A program made the translations under genes and the position numbers. The notes under the pieces were generated by a model that worked only from the letters and a program-made list of their open reading frames with translations, had not been told where the DNA came from and searched no databases. DNA of 64,000 bases, taken from the NCBI GenBank assembly GCA_024704765.1, contig JAKMXF010000321.1, positions 682,001 to 746,000 of the forward strand, in the 5' to 3' direction. Positions 4,675-15,038 of this stretch are shown here, one piece after another; within the stretch, counting starts at the first letter, position 1; every line of letters begins with the position of its first letter. Source of the DNA: Oopsacas minuta (Eukaryota; Animalia; Porifera).

Positions 4675-4819
4675 ATGGCGGAGAACTTAGATGCAATCGA
4701 TAAAGAATTTATGAAGAATGATCCATACGAAGATTTGAGTGATGTATCAGATAGTGTTTTCATATCTGAAGAGAAATATACTAAATCAGAGACACAAATA
4801 GAGGATGTTATCTCAGAAG
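4675..4819 (+). CDS. Putative first exon of the repeat-prodomain caspase (acidic peptide)
   Basis: ATGG start and an acidic open frame (MAENLDAIDKEF...VISE) ending at a consensus donor GAAG|GTGAGT in phase 1. This is compatible with the phase-1 acceptor at 6156. Extra small exons at 5.3-5.7 kb cannot be excluded. Confidence 0.4.
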
Positions 4820-5798
4820 GTGAGTTGAACATTAATAGAAATTCTAAATACAATTAACATGAATACATCCGGTAACTCGAACCCTCAGGGGAAATCAAAA
4901 TCTGTTCGAGTTAACGGAGCAGTAAGTATTAAAAGTACAAAGAAGCGAATTGAATATCCGTTCGAGCACGGACATGGACGTGACACTCTCATATCACGGT
5001 AGAATATGCCTAATTTGCCATAATTTCTAATTTATTTGGAATTTTGTTTTACTTTTTGTGTCAAAATGCAAAGAAATCTTTTTTGAATAATGTATTTATG
5101 TGGGAATTTCGTTATAGCTTGCTCAATTTCCTTTATAACTATTTATTAGCAAAGAAATTTCTTACAAATACGATTGCTATTAGACGGTTTCCCCTGTATT
5201 ATAAATTTATGATATTGAAGACATCTTGAAATTCGTGAGATTAGTGAGAAATCTTACGATTCGATTGTAAATGTAAGATTTTGTGTTAGTTTTTAATGAA
5301 ATTCTAAGGATACTGTAGTTAATGTAGACCCTAAATCACGACAAGCTCGTGTGAGTTAAGAGCCCTGCAATATATTGTAATATATGCCAATACATATTTC
5401 AGTGCAACGGAAGCTAAAGTCGAACAGACACCATGATGTTTAATTAATAGGCTATTCTGGCGAGAATTTATGTTTACAATCTCTAGTCGGATATCCGGAT
5501 CCGGCAGGTGTAGAGAATGTCTAATCTGGTACAACTCTAGTATCAAGGCATATGTATGGCTTCTCAAATTATGATATGTCATCATTTGATTCCATAATAG
5601 CCTTCTTTGGACGATTTTGTCGATATTTCGAGATCGGTTATAATTATGTTTTACAAAGGATGAATCATCGATTATTGCATGGAGTTAAAGTGAGATGTAA
5701 GTGCTTTTGAAAATTTGAAATGTTGATGGAATTTTAACACATTCCATCGTTGCGTGCGTTGCTATTCAATTAAATCGAGTTATGGTTCTTATAACCGG

Positions 5799-5822
5799 TG
5801 TTCTTATATCCGGCATCTACTG
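5799..5822. mobile_element. Solo TIR end of the Tc1/mariner-pogo-like MITE family seen at 15173
   Basis: TGTTCTTATATCCGGCATCTACTG followed by TA, identical to 15251-15274. Confidence 0.6.
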
Positions 5823-6156
5823 TATCAGAAATTCAGAATACAACTTTTGGTTTATCACTGAATGATATTTAGATCATATTAAGTGGGCTACGATAATATT
5901 CATTAAGATATATGAAAAGCCTCTAAATTGACTGAGCTTGTTTTAGAAATTTATTCTAATTTGGTTTCGGAGTGCGACCTACGAAATTTGTATTTTGCTT
6001 TTGCTTTTTGTTCATAAGGTACCGCATTCCTGGCGCTCGGCATCGGGTTTGAGGTGGCACGAATGCACCACCTTGCGCCACTCTGACAGTGCCCCTGTAT
6101 CAGAGGCTTCAGACCCATGTGTATATTAATTTATATATCACAATTGTTTCTTAAAG

Positions 6157-8349
6157 ATATGTCACAACAAGACGAGCCTACTATAGAGAAGTCTCTTCCA
6201 AATACGCTACAACAAGACGAGCCTACTATAGAGAAGTCTCTTCCAAATACGCTACAACAAGACGAGCCTGCTATAGAGAAGTCTCTTCCAAATACGCTAC
6301 AACAAGACGAGCCTACTATAGAGAAGTCTCTTCCAAATACGCCACAACAAGACGAGCCTACTATAGAGAAGTCTCTTCCAAATACGCCACAACAAGGCGA
6401 GCCTACTATAGAGAAGTCTCTTCCAAATACGCCACAACAAGGCGAGCCTACTATAGAGAAGTCTCTTCAAAATACGCCACAACAAGACGAGCCTACTATA
6501 GAGAAGTCTCTTCCAAATACGCTACAACAAGACGAGCCTACTATAGAGAAGTCTCTTCCAAATACGCCACAACAAGACGAGCCTACTATAGAGAAGTCTC
6601 TTCAAAATACGCCACAAGATAAGCTTCGAAGTAATACTCTTCCAAATACGCTACAACAAGACGAGCCTACTATACAGAAGTCTCTTCAAAATACGCTACA
6701 AGTTAAGCCTCGAAGCAATACTATTCGAAATACGCTACAACAAGACGAGCCTACTAGAAAGATGTCTTTTCAAAATATATTAGAACAAAATCAGTCTACT
6801 CGAAGAGAATCTCTTACATATTTGTCAAAACAAGATGAGGAACGAAAACAGTTTGTTAAAAATCTGTCAAAACAAAGTAAAGAGACTCGAGAAATGATTC
6901 TTGATAGTATGGCACAAGATAATCTTACAAAAATATTCCGGAAAGATATGTTTCAAGATGAAGATACTCGAAAGAAGTTTATGGGAGATATGTCACGAAG
7001 AGCTAAATCTGATAGAAAGACGTTTAATTATAGCATGTCAGAACAAGACGATGCTACTCGTAATAAATTTCTTCAAAATATTTCAAAATATGAGGCTACT
7101 CGGAAAATGTTTTATAGAGATATAAAGGAAGATGAAGTTACTCGCAAGGAGTTTCTTAAAGTTATGTCAGAATTAGATAACACACAAAGTTTGCTTATCA
7201 AATATATATTACAACAAGATGAAGCTACTCGACACATTTTTATGGAAGATTTGTCAAAATTTGATATTCGCGGACTCTATCTTAAAGCTATACTACAACA
7301 AGATGAATCTACTCGAATAATGTTTCTTAACGATTTATCACGACAAGATCCAGCTACTCGGAATGTTTTTCTGGTTGACATATTCGATGATGAGGCTACT
7401 CGATATATGTTTATTAACGATATGTCACGGCGAGCTGAAGATATTATCTTTTATGAAAATGTTTCACGAATAGATCATAATTCCAGAAAGATGGTTTTCA
7501 TAAATAAGACCAAATTTGAATTGACTCGAAGGAAATTGAATTCCGATTTAGTGCAAGATAAAGATATGAAAAAATGCTATATAGGTGATAAGAAACTTTT
7601 CGATAAAACTCGAAAGATGTTGGGTAAACGTGCACGTACTGATATGTCAACAAATGAATTTATTAAGGACATGACAAAATTTGAGGCTACTAGAAAAAGA
7701 TATATTCAGAAAATGTCAAATTTGCCCGACGAGGAGAATCTGTTTGAAACAATGCTACAACAAGATGAAAATAATTTAGAAGTGTTTCTTAACGTTATTT
7801 CTCGACAAGATAAGGAAATCCGAATTAAATTTACTAAAGATACGGCACAACAAGATAAAGCTACAAGAAAGCTTTTTGAAGAAATGGTAAATGAAGCCGA
7901 GATTTGTCGAAAGATGTTTCTTAAAGTAACTGTAAAAGTTGAGGCTAGTTGCGTTAAGTTTATTGAATGTTTGTCACGACAAGATGAGACTAGTAGGAAG
8001 ATGTTGATAAAACAATTATCACTACAAGATAATTTGCCTAATCAGTTTCTTAATGCTCTCTCAAAACACGATGAAGAAACTCTGGGTATGTTTCTTAAAG
8101 ATCTGACACAACAAGTACCAGCCAGTCGAAGGAAGTATTTTAAAGCTATGTCAGAAGATGAGACCATGTTGAAGAAATATATAACTTGTATGTCAGAATA
8201 TGAATCTACTCAAAAGATGTTCCGAAAAGAGATGTCACTATTGCATCCGGCTGCTCGAACGAATTTCAAAGATGCCTTGTTAGCACTTGATAAGGAAATT
8301 CAGGATAAGTTTCCTAGGGATTTGTCAATTCTCGATCCAAATTCTCCAG
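6157..8349 (+). CDS. Repeat-built exon (about 731 aa), probable prodomain of the downstream caspase
   Basis: Long ORF (in-frame ATG at 6159) made of near-identical 15-aa units followed by about 36 degenerate 13-15 aa units (consensus xQDExTRxxFLxxL/M). Acceptor TTTCTTAAAG| at 6156 and donor CCAG|GTAGGT at 8349/8350, both phase 1. Confidence 0.75.
6164..6613 (+). repeat. Coding tandem repeat, 45 bp x10 (QQDEPTIEKSLPNTL/P)
   Basis: 45-bp period read directly; a few point variants (L/P, D/G, P/Q, T/A). Confidence 0.95.
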
Positions 8350-8698
8350 GTAGGTCGTGAGTTCATATTCTAATTAGCATTTACAATATTTTCGATCTAT
8401 CGACGACATAGAAAATACATACTTAATTCAAGGTTGCTACTGAATAGTTCAATATTTGGTTACGGTAACCGAATATTATCAGTATTCGGTAAGACAGCTA
8501 TTCATGAATACTGATATTCAGGTTCGGTCGGTTTCAACCTTGACTAAATCACATGTATTGACACTGAATTCAAACAATTGTAAGTGTCAATGTGAGACAA
8601 TCGTAGTGAATAGCTATTATAGAAATGCCTGAATTTAATCGATTCGCAAGCTTTATACGTATTTTGAAGTGTATAACTCTCATTAACTTTTCTCAGGG

Positions 8699-9024
8699 TA
8701 GGGCTGGATTCGTTAACCGGTTAACCGCAGCTATATCCAGTTAACTGCTAAGGGAAAATATACTTGGTTAACCGAATAGTGTCATTTCCACTAATAAATT
8801 CAGTGTTCCTAAGGTTCTGAGAGGTACGAATTTATACACGAATTCTGATAGGTATTTTGAGATGCTACATTTAGTTCCGTATTCTCAATTTCAATAATTT
8901 TAAGATACAATCGGATCACGAATGCATAAATAAATAACTATGTATTGATAGCTTCAATTGTTGTCATAAAACTTCATTGATTTAAATTAATAATAATAGT
9001 AGCGGTTAACCAACCCCAGCCCTG
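8699..9024. mobile_element. Possible old hAT-like MITE
   Basis: Ends TAGGGCTGG...GGTTAACCGC and rc CAGGGCTGG...GGTTAACCGC. No matching TSD. Confidence 0.35.
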
Positions 9025-9090
9025 CAGTCAGACATTAACAAATTACGATTAGAAATTCGAACTTGTTCAATCTTGGACAAATTTATAAAG

Positions 9091-9993
9091 AGTAGAACTG
9101 TAATAAGAGGTACTCTCTATAGAATAACTGTAATAAGAGGTACTCTCTATAGAATAACTGTAATAAGAGGTACTCCCTATAGAATAACTGTAATAAGAGG
9201 TACTCTCTATAGAATAACTGTAATAAGAGGTACTCTCTATAGAATAACTGTAATAAGAGGTACTCCCTATAGAATAACTGTAATAAGAGGTACTCCCTAT
9301 AGAATAACTGTAATAAGAGGTACTCCCTATAGAATAACTGTAATAAGAGGTACTCTCTATAGAATAACTGTAATAAGAGGTACTCTCTATAGAATAACTG
9401 TAATAAGAGGTACTCCCTATAGAATAACTGTAATAAGAGGTACTCCCTATAGAATAACTGTAATAAGAGGTACTCCCTATAGAATAACTGTAATAAGAGG
9501 TACTCCCTATAGAATAACTGTAATAAGAGGTACTCTCTATAGAATAACTGTAATAAGAGGTACTCCCTATAGAATAACTGTAATAAGAGGTACTCCCTAT
9601 AGAATAACTGTAATAAGAGGTACTCTCTATAGAATAACTGTAATAAGAGGTACTCCCTATAGAATAACTGTAATAAGAGGTACTCCCTATAGAATAACTG
9701 TAATAAGAGGTACTCCCTATAGAATAACTGTAATAAGAGGTACTCCCTATAGAATAACTGGAATAAGAGGTACTCCCTATAGAATAACTGTAATAAGAGG
9801 TACTCCCTATAGAATAACTGTAATAAGAGGTACTCCCTATAGAATAACTGTAATAAGAGGTACTCCCTATAGAATAACTGTAATAAGAGGTACTCCCTAT
9901 AGAATAACTGTAATAAGAGGTACTCCCTATAGAATAACTGGAATAAGAGGTACTCTCTATAGAATTAACTGGAATAAGAGGTACTCCCTATAT
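9091..9993. repeat. 30-bp minisatellite, about 30 copies
   Basis: Unit AGAATAACTGTAATAAGAGGTACTC(T/C)CTAT, head to tail with no spacers. It lies in the predicted caspase intron 8350-10111. Confidence 0.97.
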
Positions 9994-10111
9994 AATTAGT
10001 ACAAAATTGATGATTCTTTTCTGAGAAAAGTACTCTTAAACCGAGGTATACTGTACGTATAAAAATTTTCCATCAGTTCCTTTTCAAACCTGTTTTATAA
10101 TATCTTTATAG

Positions 10112-10872
10112 ACTTCTTGAATTATCCATTCATTGAAGGCAGTAAAGCACAGGGAATTATAATAGTTAACAAGGAATTCAAAGGAAAAAAAAGAAGAAGA
10201 AACGAGGACATCCCGAAGGAGAGAGTAGGAGCTGAAAAAGAAAGAGAATATTTACAAGAGATATACGACAAATTTGACATAGACTATAAAGATAACGATT
10301 ATTTTGATGTGGAAGGAGAAGCAATAGAAAAAAAATTACAACATTTCTCAGATAATGTATCCGATGAGAGTCCAGTCATTTTCATATCCCTTGCTTCCCA
10401 TGGAGGTAGTAAAGGTATTTTGGGTACAGATGGCAGAGGCATACAGATGACAGATATAGTAAAAATCTTTACAGATAATGAAAAACTATTAGGCATTCCG
10501 AAGGTGTTCTTAATACAAGCCTGTAGGGAAAATGCCAAGGATGTCGTGTATGAAACTGAAGATAACAAAGCTATTAAGAAGGGGAAACACGTTACAACTA
10601 AAATTAGTGATGTATTAATCGCATACGCAACTTCAAATGGAACAATAGCATTTCGAGACGAAGAGGGTTCTTGGTTTTTTCGAGAACTTCGTAAATGCGT
10701 TTTAAATGAATCATATAAAAATCGACATTTCCAAGAGTTGTTAACTATTTGTTCAGATCAGTTAATAGATGAGTGTGTGGAAGAAGAAACAAAGAGTGTT
10801 ACAGAGACACCCTCTTATGATTCTACTCTCCGCAAATTCTTGTTGTTCCCTCAGAAACAGAGTCAGGACTAG
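10112..10872 (+). CDS. Caspase catalytic domain (peptidase C14A), terminal exon
   Basis: SHG (catalytic His), PKVFLIQACRE (catalytic Cys), SDVLIAYAT and AFRDEEGSWF. No upstream in-frame ATG, but an acceptor ATCTTTATAG| at 10111 in phase 1. Confidence 0.88.
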
Positions 10873-11654
10873 ATTCTAACAGTTATTTTGTGCCCCGTCT
10901 ATGGATACTTCTAAATATATGAACTAAGCATGATATATATTTATTTGTTGTTGTAGACCGTTCATATATATTTATACATAGTAAATTTGGTATAATTTGT
11001 ATCACAATATTTGAGAATGATGAAAAGTCTCAAATAGTCTAAACGATCATAAACCAGTTGAAATGATCGAATTAGCTCAAAATCATGGATAACTGCAAAC
11101 TCATTTGAATGGTAATTAGTTCGATTAATATCACCACTTCTGTCTTACAGTACGCCATCGGTTATCCGAACTCTTTCGTCTTTAAATTTGAAGATTTTTG
11201 GTGTTCGGATTGATGAAATTGTTCGGAAAACTGAACTAATAGTCAAATTTATTTTGATATGTAATATTCACTGTTTGAGGATATACGAAAATGGTGAAAA
11301 TAAGGATTTTGTAATTGCGAATATTTTATTGCATATTTATGGTAATATTCGGTTAACATCGCCACTTCGTTCGAAAAATTGTCAAAGTAGTCAGAAGCTC
11401 CTTTCTCATACAAAATTTGGACATTTTTTCACAGACTAAATGTAATATGTTTCCTACTGTGTTAGGCCGTGGTGTCGGATATTCCAGGGTATCTGTACCG
11501 TAATCTATATCTATACATTCTATACTATTCTATAGATAGTCTATATACACATTTTATTCATCTAAAAGTAACCATTTAATCAACCCATTTTAAATATGTA
11601 TTAAATATTTAAGATATTTAACATAAATAACAATACAATGTACAAGATATTACA

Positions 11655-14600
11655 TTAATCAATGTACAGAGTGAATAGGAGGTCAACTGGTATCTTATAA
11701 GATCTCAGGGTAGCTACAGCTCCATACATAAACTCCTTTAGCTCGAGGTTCAATAAAAATGCATTATCTGTATAATACAATGTTGTGTATGTGGATTTTG
11801 ACATTACTCCAATCCACTCGTGTAGGATCTGATGGGACAATGACGTCATCAAAAATACGTATATCTTCTCTATAGGTCCACTCCTATTATTGTAATCTTC
11901 TAGCTTACTGAATGTGGTTATAAACCTGTTTTGTGAAGATGATTTGTTAACTGATTGAGACAAGGAGAATTTCATATCAACTAGAATATGAGAGAAATAA
12001 ATCCATAATTGTGTGAATGGGTTTTTAGTACAATTTAATTCGTATAGCAACATTTCAACTAATAGAGGAATTAAACGATTTTCTCCTAACACTAAATATG
12101 TCAGTGAATGTACTGCTAGTCTAGGTTCTGTGAAATAATGTATGACGTCACGAATTGAATCTTGTAGACGAGTTTTAATACATTCAGAAGGACTATCACT
12201 ATCAGAAGTTCCTTCAAATCGAATATTTAAACTATTCTGTTGGGTTAGATACTTCCTTGCAGCGAAGTAATACTCTACACTTTCATCTTTCTGTTTTTCA
12301 CTTAGATTTCTGTTAGCTTCTATGACATACAAATTTCCAGTCAGATTGTTAGTTATTTTAATGTTATTGATAAACACGTCTGGATTCAAACCTCCATTAT
12401 CGTGTCCGACTCTCACACCAAGGATGTGTCCAATATTGTGACATTTGAAAGTGCAGAAATGAGAACCCTTTGGTAGTTTGATGACGTCAGTCCTTCCTAG
12501 CGTCCCTGATACGACTAGCCATAAGACTGAAGTATGTTTTAGCACTGTTCTAGCTATAGATAGTGTAGCAGAGTAGTTCAGTTCTGATTGAGGAAAATCG
12601 TGTGTAAAACAAGAAAATTCCACACAAGATAAACTATCCAAATGGTATAGCAACTGTTCTAATTCAGTGTCAGTACGTATGAAAGATGATTTGTGATAAT
12701 TTGTATTGATGTATGTCGTTAAAGATAGAAGCTCTTTGACACGTGTCGAGAGAGATTGTTTCTCCAGAAGTAATTTAATCCACATACGTACTCTACCTAT
12801 ATCTGTCATTATACAATCTTGATCCAGGATATGCTGTACCTCTGTTATAAGAGGATTTGTAGCTGTGCCAACAGAGCCACGACGAGTATCTAGTTCTCTG
12901 TGAGGAGAACTAGGGATAGAATAGCTGAAGGAGCGAGACATGGCGTATTTTGATTTGAATCTCTTCTTCTTTGTATCAAGTGCAGGTAGCATAACTGAAT
13001 TAAAAGATTGAATAATTGAGTTATGTTTGTAAGCTAGTATATGCTCCCATAAATGAGAGCCATCCGTTTGTGATGTATATCCATGTCGCCAAATATTCTC
13101 CAATGCTTCTATCGAGTTTGAAATCAATCCTTTATCCTCAATACTCATTGAACTGTATTTCCTATGTCCAATCAATATCCTATCTGTATCACTTGTATTT
13201 AGATCTGGTTCATAATGATTACGTAATGTCAATGTGACATGATGAGTGATCAGCTGTTTGATACGTAGACTAGCTTGTCTAAGTAAATCAGACAATTCTA
13301 CTGCTATTAAATGTGGGTAATCCAACGTGTCTCTGTCTGACTCAGTTTCTATGTCGTGAATATCATGAGAATTACAGCAGGTAAATATTCCTGGGCTTGA
13401 ATCGTTATCATTCGAAATCCCGCATGCCAATGGTACATGCATGTTGTCAGGGAGAACACCGTTGTATCCATGCAGTGGAGGTGAGCCATCAGAAATTTCT
13501 ATAGGCATAGGAGCTGTTGTATCTTCTATAGTTTGTGAGTTCTTTACTCTAAATATGAATTTCTCACAAGTTGTATTATAATTACCCACTGGAAATACCA
13601 ATTTAGATGTTTCATTGTTTTGTGATAGGTGACTGATAAAAAGCTTAGCGATTGGATGTGTGACGTCATTCGGTGTTATATTCTCTATTAAATCGTCTAT
13701 GAATTTAGTGAACATTTGGGTTTCAAAAAAGAGCGATAAAAATTCTCGATCTTTCGTTGTATTTTCAGATAAAAAAGCAATTTTATCAAAAGTTCTTGTC
13801 AGTAAAGTTTCTGAGTTTGGTTTTATAATGAACTTAGCTACGTGACTGAAAGTGTTGAGAAACAAACTGTAAAATATATTCCTAACTTTACAATCAAACT
13901 CCATCCTAGAAATGAAATCTTTTGTGAAAATCTCAGAAGAATTGTACTCTTCAAGAATTGGTGAGATTTCAGGTATATTTGAATCTCTTCGCTTGGATGA
14001 ACTTTGAACTCTAATATTAGAAAGTTCTTTCACGAGAGACATTAGTTCTGTGAGAGAAGAGACTTGTTCTTCACTTGTCTCTAAGCTCCTACTATTAGAT
14101 AATAAATGCGTATTGTATAGCTTAGTCAATTCGGTATGTATCTGTTCTGAGAAAGGTAATTGAGGGATGTAATGTTCAGAGAAATCTACGGAAGATGTGG
14201 TGAGATTTATTCGGCAATAAGCACCTGAGAATTTCAAATCGGAATCAAAACGATTTTCTCTTTGATGGAGCCAGCCTATTATGAATGGCAGGGGAGCATC
14301 CAGGAACTCCACTGAAGGAGAAGGTAATATAGGTACATACGGGTATGTCCAGAAAAATGGGTAAATTAGAGAAGACAAACTTTCACAAAAGTAATGGAGT
14401 TTATCTAGATTATCAGATTGTATGAGAATGCTATGCTCCAGTAGAATACAAGTTACAACCTTTACAAGAATACTTGGGTTTAGAAATCTACACAATTGGG
14501 TATAACCCAGCTGGAATAATGGCAAATCATCTTTTGAAGGAAGTATACTATACAAATGTGTATCTGTTGGTGAATGTATTCTAAGAATACTATCATAGGT

Positions 14601-15038
14601 AGGGAAAGTTACGTTATTTATAAGATTGTATATAAAACTCCCAAAAGTAATTTCAGTTTTTGGAGAAGAAAGCATTTTTAGTATTTCTGACAAATAGCTT
14701 TGTAACGTTGAGTAGAATGGGAACTGAGAAATGAGTACAATACTCTTGGAAACATAGTAAGCACTGGTATGACTATTGTCTGGTATTGTAACACAGGATC
14801 CGTAATATTTTGATCCATTTCCTCTCGTCACCAGAAAATTGTGAGTGATAGGATCAAAGGCGTTGTCTCTGATAATCAAACCAAATGGCATACTAAGAAG
14901 TTGAATAGCAGAGTCTTCGTATATGTGTACTGTGTCAGGGTAGCTGTATATTTTGGTAGGGAGGGTGTCTCTAGTTATTTGAGACTCCTGGGGACACCCG
15001 AACACAAGGAAGTAATCAGCCAAGGCTATAGAATTCAT
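11655..15038 (-). CDS. DENND5: DENN domain-containing protein 5 (Rab6IP1)-like Rab GEF, single exon
   Basis: uDENN/DENN (YPYVPILP, DAPLPFIIG), dDENN (FFETQMFTKFI), RUN (IGRVRMWIKLLLEKQ), PLAT (GVRVGHDNGGLNP) and a second RUN-like region, in DENND5 order. 1127 aa. Confidence 0.88.
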   Translation of the reverse strand: MNSIALADYFLVFGCPQESQITRDTLPTKIYSYPDTVHIYEDSAIQLLSMPFGLIIRDNAFDPITHNFLVTRGNGSKYYGSCVTIPDNSHTSAYYVSKSIVLISQFPFYSTLQSYLSEILKMLSSPKTEITFGSFIYNLINNVTFPTYDSILRIHSPTDTHLYSILPSKDDLPLFQLGYTQLCRFLNPSILVKVVTCILLEHSILIQSDNLDKLHYFCESLSSLIYPFFWTYPYVPILPSPSVEFLDAPLPFIIGWLHQRENRFDSDLKFSGAYCRINLTTSSVDFSEHYIPQLPFSEQIHTELTKLYNTHLLSNSRSLETSEEQVSSLTELMSLVKELSNIRVQSSSKRRDSNIPEISPILEEYNSSEIFTKDFISRMEFDCKVRNIFYSLFLNTFSHVAKFIIKPNSETLLTRTFDKIAFLSENTTKDREFLSLFFETQMFTKFIDDLIENITPNDVTHPIAKLFISHLSQNNETSKLVFPVGNYNTTCEKFIFRVKNSQTIEDTTAPMPIEISDGSPPLHGYNGVLPDNMHVPLACGISNDNDSSPGIFTCCNSHDIHDIETESDRDTLDYPHLIAVELSDLLRQASLRIKQLITHHVTLTLRNHYEPDLNTSDTDRILIGHRKYSSMSIEDKGLISNSIEALENIWRHGYTSQTDGSHLWEHILAYKHNSIIQSFNSVMLPALDTKKKRFKSKYAMSRSFSYSIPSSPHRELDTRRGSVGTATNPLITEVQHILDQDCIMTDIGRVRMWIKLLLEKQSLSTRVKELLSLTTYINTNYHKSSFIRTDTELEQLLYHLDSLSCVEFSCFTHDFPQSELNYSATLSIARTVLKHTSVLWLVVSGTLGRTDVIKLPKGSHFCTFKCHNIGHILGVRVGHDNGGLNPDVFINNIKITNNLTGNLYVIEANRNLSEKQKDESVEYYFAARKYLTQQNSLNIRFEGTSDSDSPSECIKTRLQDSIRDVIHYFTEPRLAVHSLTYLVLGENRLIPLLVEMLLYELNCTKNPFTQLWIYFSHILVDMKFSLSQSVNKSSSQNRFITTFSKLEDYNNRSGPIEKIYVFLMTSLSHQILHEWIGVMSKSTYTTLYYTDNAFLLNLELKEFMYGAVATLRSYKIPVDLLFTLYID

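Follow-up and report, generated by a model that had tools for sequence, protein, structure and literature searches.

How does a caspase come to carry an N-terminal extension of about 780 residues that belongs to no known protein family, and what might such an extension do? These questions are raised by a gene of the glass sponge Oopsacas minuta, on contig JAKMXF010000321.1 of assembly GCA_024704765.1. The window that we analysed is a stretch of 64,000 nucleotides (nt; positions 682,001 to 746,000 of the contig's forward strand), and coordinates given without another label are positions within it. The gene, LOD99_11756, lies at 4675-10872; it is expressed and spliced, and it encodes an intact caspase whose orphan repeat extension occurs in O. 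minuta alone. As read from the sequence, the C-terminal 250 residues of the product are a predicted aspartate-specific protease with a short inter-subunit linker, and the N-terminal ~780 residues consist of roughly 50 short repeats, which in the searches made are restricted to O. minuta. Taken as a whole, the explanation that we favour, with moderate confidence, is that the extension is a prodomain that can be removed from an effector-type caspase and that serves in regulation or self-association.

Do the repeats and the caspase belong to one gene? The original prediction, made from the window sequence, had joined a repeat reading frame to a caspase reading frame across an intron (8349/10112), and to a short acidic exon upstream (4819/6157). 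All of these borders and phases hold, as the joined three-exon product (4675-4819, 6157-8349 and 10112-10872) is the public protein P0001 (LOD99_11756, O. minuta), identical at every one of its 1032 residues, and in the genome record the LOD99_11756 gene spans the same 6198 bases as the window model. The 733-residue translation of the repeat reading frame has a single match among 5.8 billion proteins, P0001, at 100% identity. The further claim that the protein was hidden by splicing has to be given up, since the public annotation, made by BRAKER/Augustus with RNA-seq hints, already holds the exact model. The gene is publicly annotated and uncharacterised: the protein is labelled "hypothetical protein", no paper on the caspases of Oopsacas or of hexactinellids was found in the published literature, and the O. 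minuta genome paper is silent on caspases and apoptosis. The gene is made up of the following parts, in which a slash within a nucleotide sequence marks a splice boundary, and alignment A1 is that of this caspase with nine sponge homologues (10 sponge caspases).

4675..4819, plus strand: exon 1, which holds the start codon and encodes an acidic leader of 48 residues (31% Asp+Glu); its end is in phase 1; residues 1-48 of P0001, tblastn 100% identity.
4820..6156, plus strand: intron 1, GT...AG, with donor GAAG/GTGAGT and acceptor CTTAAAG/AT; implied by the public protein.
6157..8349, plus strand: exon 2, symmetric (phase 1-1), with the whole repeat region, residues 49-780, one codon being shared at either end.
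6164..6777, plus strand: 45-bp tandem array of 13.9 copies, with the 15-residue unit QQDEPTIEKSLPNTL/P; Tandem Repeats Finder (TRF) score 913.
6735..8327, plus strand: 37 contiguous degenerate units of 13-16 residues each, tiling residues 242-772 exactly.
8350..10111, plus strand: intron 2, GT...AG, whose excision links the repeat exon to the caspase exon; the end of a contig from sequencing run X1 matches 8318-8347.
9096..9996, plus strand: 30-bp tandem repeat of 30 copies, non-coding, within intron 2; TRF score 1702.
10112..10872, plus strand: exon 3, with the caspase (Peptidase C14) domain and the stop codon; PF00656 at E 3.8e-27.
10399..10401, plus strand: codon of the catalytic His876, motif SHG, aligned with caspase-3 His121 and invariant in alignment A1.
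10522..10524, plus strand: codon of the catalytic Cys917, motif QACRE, aligned with caspase-3 Cys163; Q, A and C are invariant in alignment A1.

Translation of exon 1 starts at the first ATG downstream of an in-frame TAA, and the exon, which ends at the donor GAAG/GTGAGT, has no Pfam family. Exon 2 is bordered by the acceptor CTTAAAG/ and the donor CCAG/GTAGGT, and the acceptor sequence of exon 3 is CTTTATAG/. The codon for Asp780 is split across intron 2, with G at 8349 and AC at 10112-10113. The 30-bp repeat within intron 2, whose copies are 98% identical, reads as an open frame of 308 codons (RGTLYRITVI...); this is a mechanical artefact, because the period is divisible by 3.

Is the joined message made? 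Sequencing runs X1-X4 were placed on window positions 9700-11650, in which the exon 3 acceptor is the one splice site of the model that is covered. A run X1 contig that aligns from 10110 onward carries 88 extra letters upstream, the last 30 of which have a unique match in the window, at the end of exon 2 (8318-8347). Because the AG at 8348-8349 equals the AG at 10110-10111, the joint is assigned to 8349/10112 under the GT-AG rule, so that one of the two junctions at which the original prediction could be checked is present in this one contig. Depth on the X1 contigs is 735-1850 on exon 3, 109 in the intron and 30 past about 10950. The loose ends of X1 show a TruSeq-type adapter, and X2 and X3 carry a Nextera adapter; from the depth contrast and the adapter type, in place of a recorded label, we infer that run X1 is RNA. 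The depth of X2-X4 is flat over exon, intron and intergenic DNA and the joined form occurs in none of these runs, which argues against a genomic retrocopy. Part of the locus is duplicated elsewhere in the genome, and the spliced contig has 12 nt, coding ILDP, that are missing from the duplicate; the contig therefore derives from the window gene. No loose end joining exon 1 to exon 3 is listed at the exon 3 acceptor in runs X1-X4. As a separate observation, an X1 contig departs from the window after 10925, about 50 nt beyond the stop codon and near the drop in X1 depth, with 19 unmatched letters beginning GTAAGT; this might be a splice donor in the 3' untranslated region or some other variant.

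What kind of caspase is it? Exon 3 matches Pfam PF00656 at 95.9 bits (cut-off 21.4; E 3.8e-27) over profile positions 5-231 of 233, and the closest solved structures are caspase-3 (E 1.2e-12), caspase-8 and caspase-6. A structure-sequence alignment indicates that the residues matching caspase-3 Arg64, His121, Cys163 and Arg207, as well as the GSWF motif, are all kept. For the S1 aspartate pocket (Arg179, Gln283 and Arg341 in caspase-1 numbering), the R of RVGAE, the Q of QACRE and the R of AFRD align with caspase-3. In alignment A1 both R36 and R180 of the caspase domain are invariant, along with the catalytic H and the Q, A and C of the active-site motif. By sequence, then, the protein has the catalytic dyad of the caspase family, His876 (SHG) and Cys917 (QACRE). 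The closest paralogue, P0002, is an O. minuta "Caspase-3-like" protein of 282 amino acids (aa) at 49% identity, and the other nearest relatives are 228-371-aa proteins from other assemblies at 29-42% identity. Judged from these alignments, exon 3 encodes an intact, effector-like caspase-3/-8-like domain, within a sponge clade that otherwise has little or no prodomain.

Comparison with the effector caspases (caspase-3/-7/-6) and caspase-8, family C14A, brings out both what is kept and what is new. Common to all are PF00656, the catalytic His/Cys, the S1 Arg-Gln-Arg, GSWF and a short inter-subunit linker, in which ETED930/N aligns with the caspase-3 inter-subunit site IETD/S (here the slash marks the bond cleaved in caspase-3 and predicted to be cleaved in the sponge protein). 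The active-site pentapeptide is QACRE in the sponge protein versus QACRG in effector caspases and caspase-8, and a Lys/Arg-rich insert, KGKKRRRNEDIPKE, lies ahead of the first S1 arginine. A further difference is at the N-terminus, where effector caspases have a prodomain of ~28 residues and the sponge protein instead has the 780-residue extension.

The extension has three parts: the acidic leader of 48 residues, 13 near-identical proline-rich 15-mers, and the 37 degenerate units. The first ten copies of the 45-bp array differ at just 4 sites, all nonsynonymous, and the proline content of this part is 14%; from its composition it is probably disordered. In the 37-unit region the consensus of the last 13 positions is DDATRKMFLKDMS, and, counting back from the end of the unit, residues are hydrophobic in 97% of units at position -5, in 76% at -4 and in 84% at -1. 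Such an i, i+1, i+4 hydrophobic stripe fits one short amphipathic helix per unit, and the Pro or Asp/Ser found at the unit start is suited to helix capping.

Is the repeat known from elsewhere? No Pfam family is found in residues 1-790 at E<=0.01, and no death fold (CARD, DED or PYD). A lone CARD line at E 0.56, with 10.7 bits versus a cut-off of 23.9, is noise. Neither ANK, ARM/HEAT, TPR nor other helical repeats give a Pfam match, and the units measure 13-16 residues versus the 33-42 typical of these families. When residues 236-781 were compared by phmmer with 1.84 billion cluster representatives, the only credible match was P0136, a fragment from an O. minuta duplicate. A cricket insect-allergen-repeat protein, P0137 (phmmer E 9.4e-11), was rejected: a single stretch of 38 residues at 37% identity is counted over its 14 copies, so that a chance or compositional match is multiplied by 14, and the sponge sequence itself gives no match to PF06757, the insect allergen repeat. 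An ESM Atlas feature search gave no usable match for the extension.

AlphaFold2, run with no alignment, gave an all-helical model of residues 236-781 with a predicted local distance difference test (pLDDT) score of 46.6 and a partly helical one of residues 344-528 with a score of 50.5; the best-scored stretch has one 9-13-residue helix per unit. The VIA-align structure search returned only generic three-helix bundles, the best at Z 11.3, against a bar of Z about 13 for helical models. The original prediction had called the protein a probable caspase with a novel repeat prodomain of ~730 aa in place of a death fold. The call of a caspase is borne out by exon 3, with its intact Peptidase C14 domain and its catalytic and S1 residues; the novelty of the prodomain stands too, as one spliced gene encodes both parts and the repeat belongs to no known family. 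A search for other carriers of the repeat, which had also been suggested, leads only to a decayed partial duplicate in the O. minuta genome (P0136). The proposal that the array is helical is in part upheld, by the amphipathic pattern and the helical models, and in part left weak by the low confidence of those models.

What has selection preserved in the array? The repeat reading frame has 730 open codons, for which the chance probability from composition is about 1e-24.5; the other five frames hold 17-77 stops. Compared with their consensus, the 37 units have a proportion of synonymous differences (pS) of 0.35 and of nonsynonymous differences (pN) of 0.36, for a ratio (omega) of about 1.05, and codon positions 1, 2 and 3 are changed in 37%, 33% and 38% of cases. 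The hydrophobic/polar contrast was compared with neutral simulations, 2000 runs of drift from the consensus with an equal number of changes and with stops forbidden. The observed contrast of 0.70, versus 0.52 +/- 0.044 under neutrality, was reached by 0/2000 runs (P<0.0005). By column, positions -5 (P 0.0005) and -1 (P 0.0075) depart from drift and every other column fits it. Selection therefore preserves the open frame and the amphipathicity of the helices, and little else. From its sequence the repeat part looks like a recent addition to the protein under loose constraint.

The partial duplicate gives a second view. Window positions 7827-13456 are duplicated elsewhere in the O. minuta genome, in two pieces on JAKMXF010000063 and JAKMXF010000007 (L006:10024-11497 and L001:1-3514). 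The duplicated span begins 174 codons before the end of exon 2 and runs through intron 2 and exon 3 into the neighbouring DENN gene, of which it takes in the 3' part, encoding the RUN/PLAT half. The 30-bp intron-2 repeat forms the end of one contig and the start of the other, and the two pieces probably represent one locus split by an assembly gap. The annotation treats them as separate genes, LOD99_10810, LOD99_9827 and one for a 409-aa RUN protein. The duplicate retains the splice donor and acceptor of intron 2 and has frameshifts in its caspase exon, and the public model P0136 ends at a read-through stop, at the contig edge inside the intron repeat. The duplicate also accounts for the other letters seen in the runs at 10115 and 10125 and for the loose end of X2/X3 at 10187. 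Comparison of the two copies gives an omega of 0.74 over the repeat part and of 1.85 over the caspase exon. In the p20-coding half (10114-10593 versus L001) the nonsynonymous divergence (dN), 0.18, exceeds both the synonymous divergence (dS), 0.09, and the divergence of the adjacent intron, about 0.07. Among the 63 amino-acid differences between the copies, the outgroup state is kept by the window copy at 31 and by the duplicate at 14; both copies have changed in the p20 half, the duplicate about twice as much. The dN excess could reflect positive selection or a mosaic produced by gene conversion.

Where did the extension come from? In the paralogue P0002 the first exon encodes 21 residues (MAE...) and a phase-1 intron lies 5 residues ahead of YPLI; in LOD99_11756 a phase-1 intron lies 3 residues ahead of YPFI. 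Exon 1 and the N-terminus of P0002 share no significant similarity except the initial MAE. Along the array the units run, 5' to 3', from identical to degenerate. The simplest history suggested by the sequence has a coding repeat turning into an exon within an ancestral phase-1 intron and multiplying there. In this scenario, the ancestral gene would have had a short 5' exon, a phase-1 intron and a caspase exon, the layout still present in P0002; a 45-bp coding unit would have turned into a phase 1-1 exon within that intron and then been amplified in tandem, with the youngest, near-identical copies at the 5' end and the 37 older, drifted copies nearer the caspase. The extension is apparently not a borrowed domain but one that formed in place.

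The surroundings of the gene bear on the same question. Convergent with the caspase gene is a single-exon gene at 11655-15038 on the minus strand, for a 1127-aa DENN/RUN/PLAT (DENND5-like) protein, with orthologues in six other sponge assemblies at 51-74% identity. In the three related sponge assemblies that were fetched, these orthologues are 66-73% identical, and the genes beyond the 5' side of DENN are kept as in the window at 15-23 kb, with NT-C2/CH in 3/3 assemblies and GNT-I and TRAF-MATH in 2/3. On the near side, where the caspase gene lies in the window, the related assemblies have DSPc or TRAF genes; synteny is broken exactly there, and tblastn found no trace of the caspase or the repeat beside DENN in any of the three. 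No syntenic match exists for the part of the window upstream of exon 1, which has only short open reading frames without Pfam matches. Reading frame fragments at 1754-2734 gave, by eye, an impression of retroelement remains; they have no Pfam match, and we make no claim for them.

How might the protein work? In the explanation that we favour, each older unit would fold into a single short amphipathic helix, with the young proline-rich units disordered. The extension would act as a long prodomain that holds or places the zymogen, most likely by weak self-association or by binding of the helix array to a partner or a surface. The extension would be cut off at or near Asp780 (NSPD/F), and the linker cut at ETED930/N upon activation. 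Selection would act mainly on the open frame and the amphipathic helices, not on a specific binding surface.

Several points weigh against this explanation. The support for the exon 1/exon 2 junction is the public BRAKER model alone, and that for the 8349/10112 junction is one spliced contig, from a run whose identity as RNA comes from depth and adapter and is not on record; evidence for the LOD99_11756 protein is at the gene and transcript level only. Both AlphaFold models have low confidence, the second making half of its sequence strands, and because of that low confidence the picture of helical units draws mainly on the sequence pattern. The cleavage sites at Asp780 and Asp930 are proposed from alignment and position only. 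As for the near-neutral omega of the units, mis-registration of units in the right-anchored alignment shifts the value towards 1, and purifying and diversifying selection acting together, as they do in real immune receptors, could likewise produce a value of about 1.

That last point leads to the reading put forward in the original prediction, in which the array is a sensor or scaffold, so that binding of a ligand (for example microbial) or assembly of the array gathers caspase domains to form a one-component death or immune receptor. A long prodomain is indeed an initiator-like architecture, the amphipathic pattern is under selective maintenance, ankyrin repeat prodomains occur in flatworm caspases (PMC11463336), and an omega of about 1, together with the p20 dN above dS versus the duplicate, is compatible with an arms-race gene. 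Against this reading, no ligand-binding family is recognised by Pfam and no confident fold was obtained; the three codon positions have changed equally, as in drift; and one third of the array is a recent proline-rich minisatellite whose few variants are all nonsynonymous. The array is missing from the matching position in the three related sponge assemblies and, outside O. minuta, from the 1.84 billion representatives, the linker is of the short effector type, and the closest relatives have no prodomain. The hydrophobic stripe fits amphipathic helices and says nothing on ligand sensing. We consider a sensor of this kind unlikely.

A second possibility is that the array, a domain born in place from a 45-bp minisatellite in a caspase intron, has become an ordered solenoid of amphipathic helices whose self-assembly or target binding would activate its own caspase by proximity. 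This we regard as improbable. If it were true, the gene would be a single-chain death switch of recent evolutionary origin and would offer a datable de novo birth of a domain feeding an innate-immunity or cell-death protease.

Could the extension be dispensable? Skipping of exon 2 would give a functional caspase of 299 residues with a short prodomain, and the long isoform would merely be tolerated, as a consequence of the exonisation of a minisatellite in an intron. Exon 2 is phase 1-1, so that skipping it keeps the frame and rebuilds the Asp codon, the skipped product would resemble P0002 in layout, and the units drift near-neutrally. Set against these points, exon 2 is the only exon seen joined to the exon 3 acceptor, and the hydrophobic stripe is under selection. 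Were exon 2 usually left out of the message, the 730-codon frame would moreover be lost; the 37 old units are ~36% diverged, yet they contain no stop or frameshift. We give this reading little credence.

By analogy, the 37 amphipathic helices might bind membrane or lipid and so bring the caspase to the syncytial membrane or to an organelle. Apolipoproteins and perilipins carry amphipathic-repeat arrays that bind membrane or lipid surfaces, with lipid-binding repeats of 11/22 residues. In the sponge protein, the three-residue stripe (-5, -4, -1) with charged residues elsewhere speaks for this reading, the stripe being selected and the rest drifting, and AlphaFold gives helices without confident packing. 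The units of 14-15 residues do not correspond to the 11/22-residue lipid-binding repeats, however, and the argument is one of analogy only; it has a slim chance of being right.

That the repeat and caspase reading frames are two separate genes, mis-joined, is close to refuted and highly improbable: the repeat frame does have its own ATG (6159) and a stop TGA at 8360 just within the intron, and the duplicate model P0136 ends at that read-through stop, but the spliced contig connects 8349 to 10112, no ATG precedes the domain within the caspase frame, both frames are united in the public RNA-seq-guided model, the donor and acceptor are conserved in the duplicate, and P0136, stopping at a contig edge in the intron repeat, could not include the caspase exon.

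How unusual, then, is a caspase with a long prodomain of this kind? Drosophila Strica and Aedes CASPS16 have a long Ser/Thr-rich prodomain with no CARD, DED or defined motif, occur in one lineage, and are poorly understood in function (PMC4924790, PMC12292325). The sponge protein is like them in having a long, lineage-restricted prodomain without CARD, DED or a defined interaction motif. It differs in that its extension contains 15% Ser+Thr and consists, over ~780 residues, of ~50 tandem units with an amphipathic pattern, without any sequence relationship. It has neither the Ser/Thr-rich prodomain nor the place in an insect-specific clade that mark Strica-like caspases, and the resemblance is functional only. 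Lophotrochozoan caspases also have unusual prodomains: ankyrin in flatworms, and Z-binding, kinase, PARP, TIR and ROC in annelids (PMC11463336). These resemble the sponge case in the species- or lineage-specific swap of the death-fold prodomain, in one instance for a helical ANK array. The lophotrochozoan prodomains were recruited from existing families, whereas the sponge extension matches none and apparently arose in place by repeat expansion.

Should the long isoform prove functional, a death protease would have gained a very large N-terminal module without domain shuffling, and the module would stem from a short coding repeat that expanded inside an existing intron. All stages can be seen in one exon: copies that are fresh and identical, copies that are drifting, and a hydrophobic stripe under selection. 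The case adds to the picture in which early-branching and invertebrate animals vary the attachments of their caspases freely; by itself it reveals no new signalling principle.

Two arrangements of sponge caspase genes outside the window are also of interest. On O. minuta contig JAKMXF010000288 (L008:1069-6745), a tandem row of three same-strand caspase genes (342, 282 and 326 aa) fits within 6 kb, and the middle one is P0002, the closest full-length paralogue of the gene described here. On ENA contig ctg319687 (L002:1424-6748), from another sponge-type assembly, two caspase genes lie head to head, each flanked on its outer side by a mirrored gene for a 204-aa protein with a weak PARP match; this arrangement has the look of a palindrome, a PARP-caspase pair duplicated in inverted orientation.

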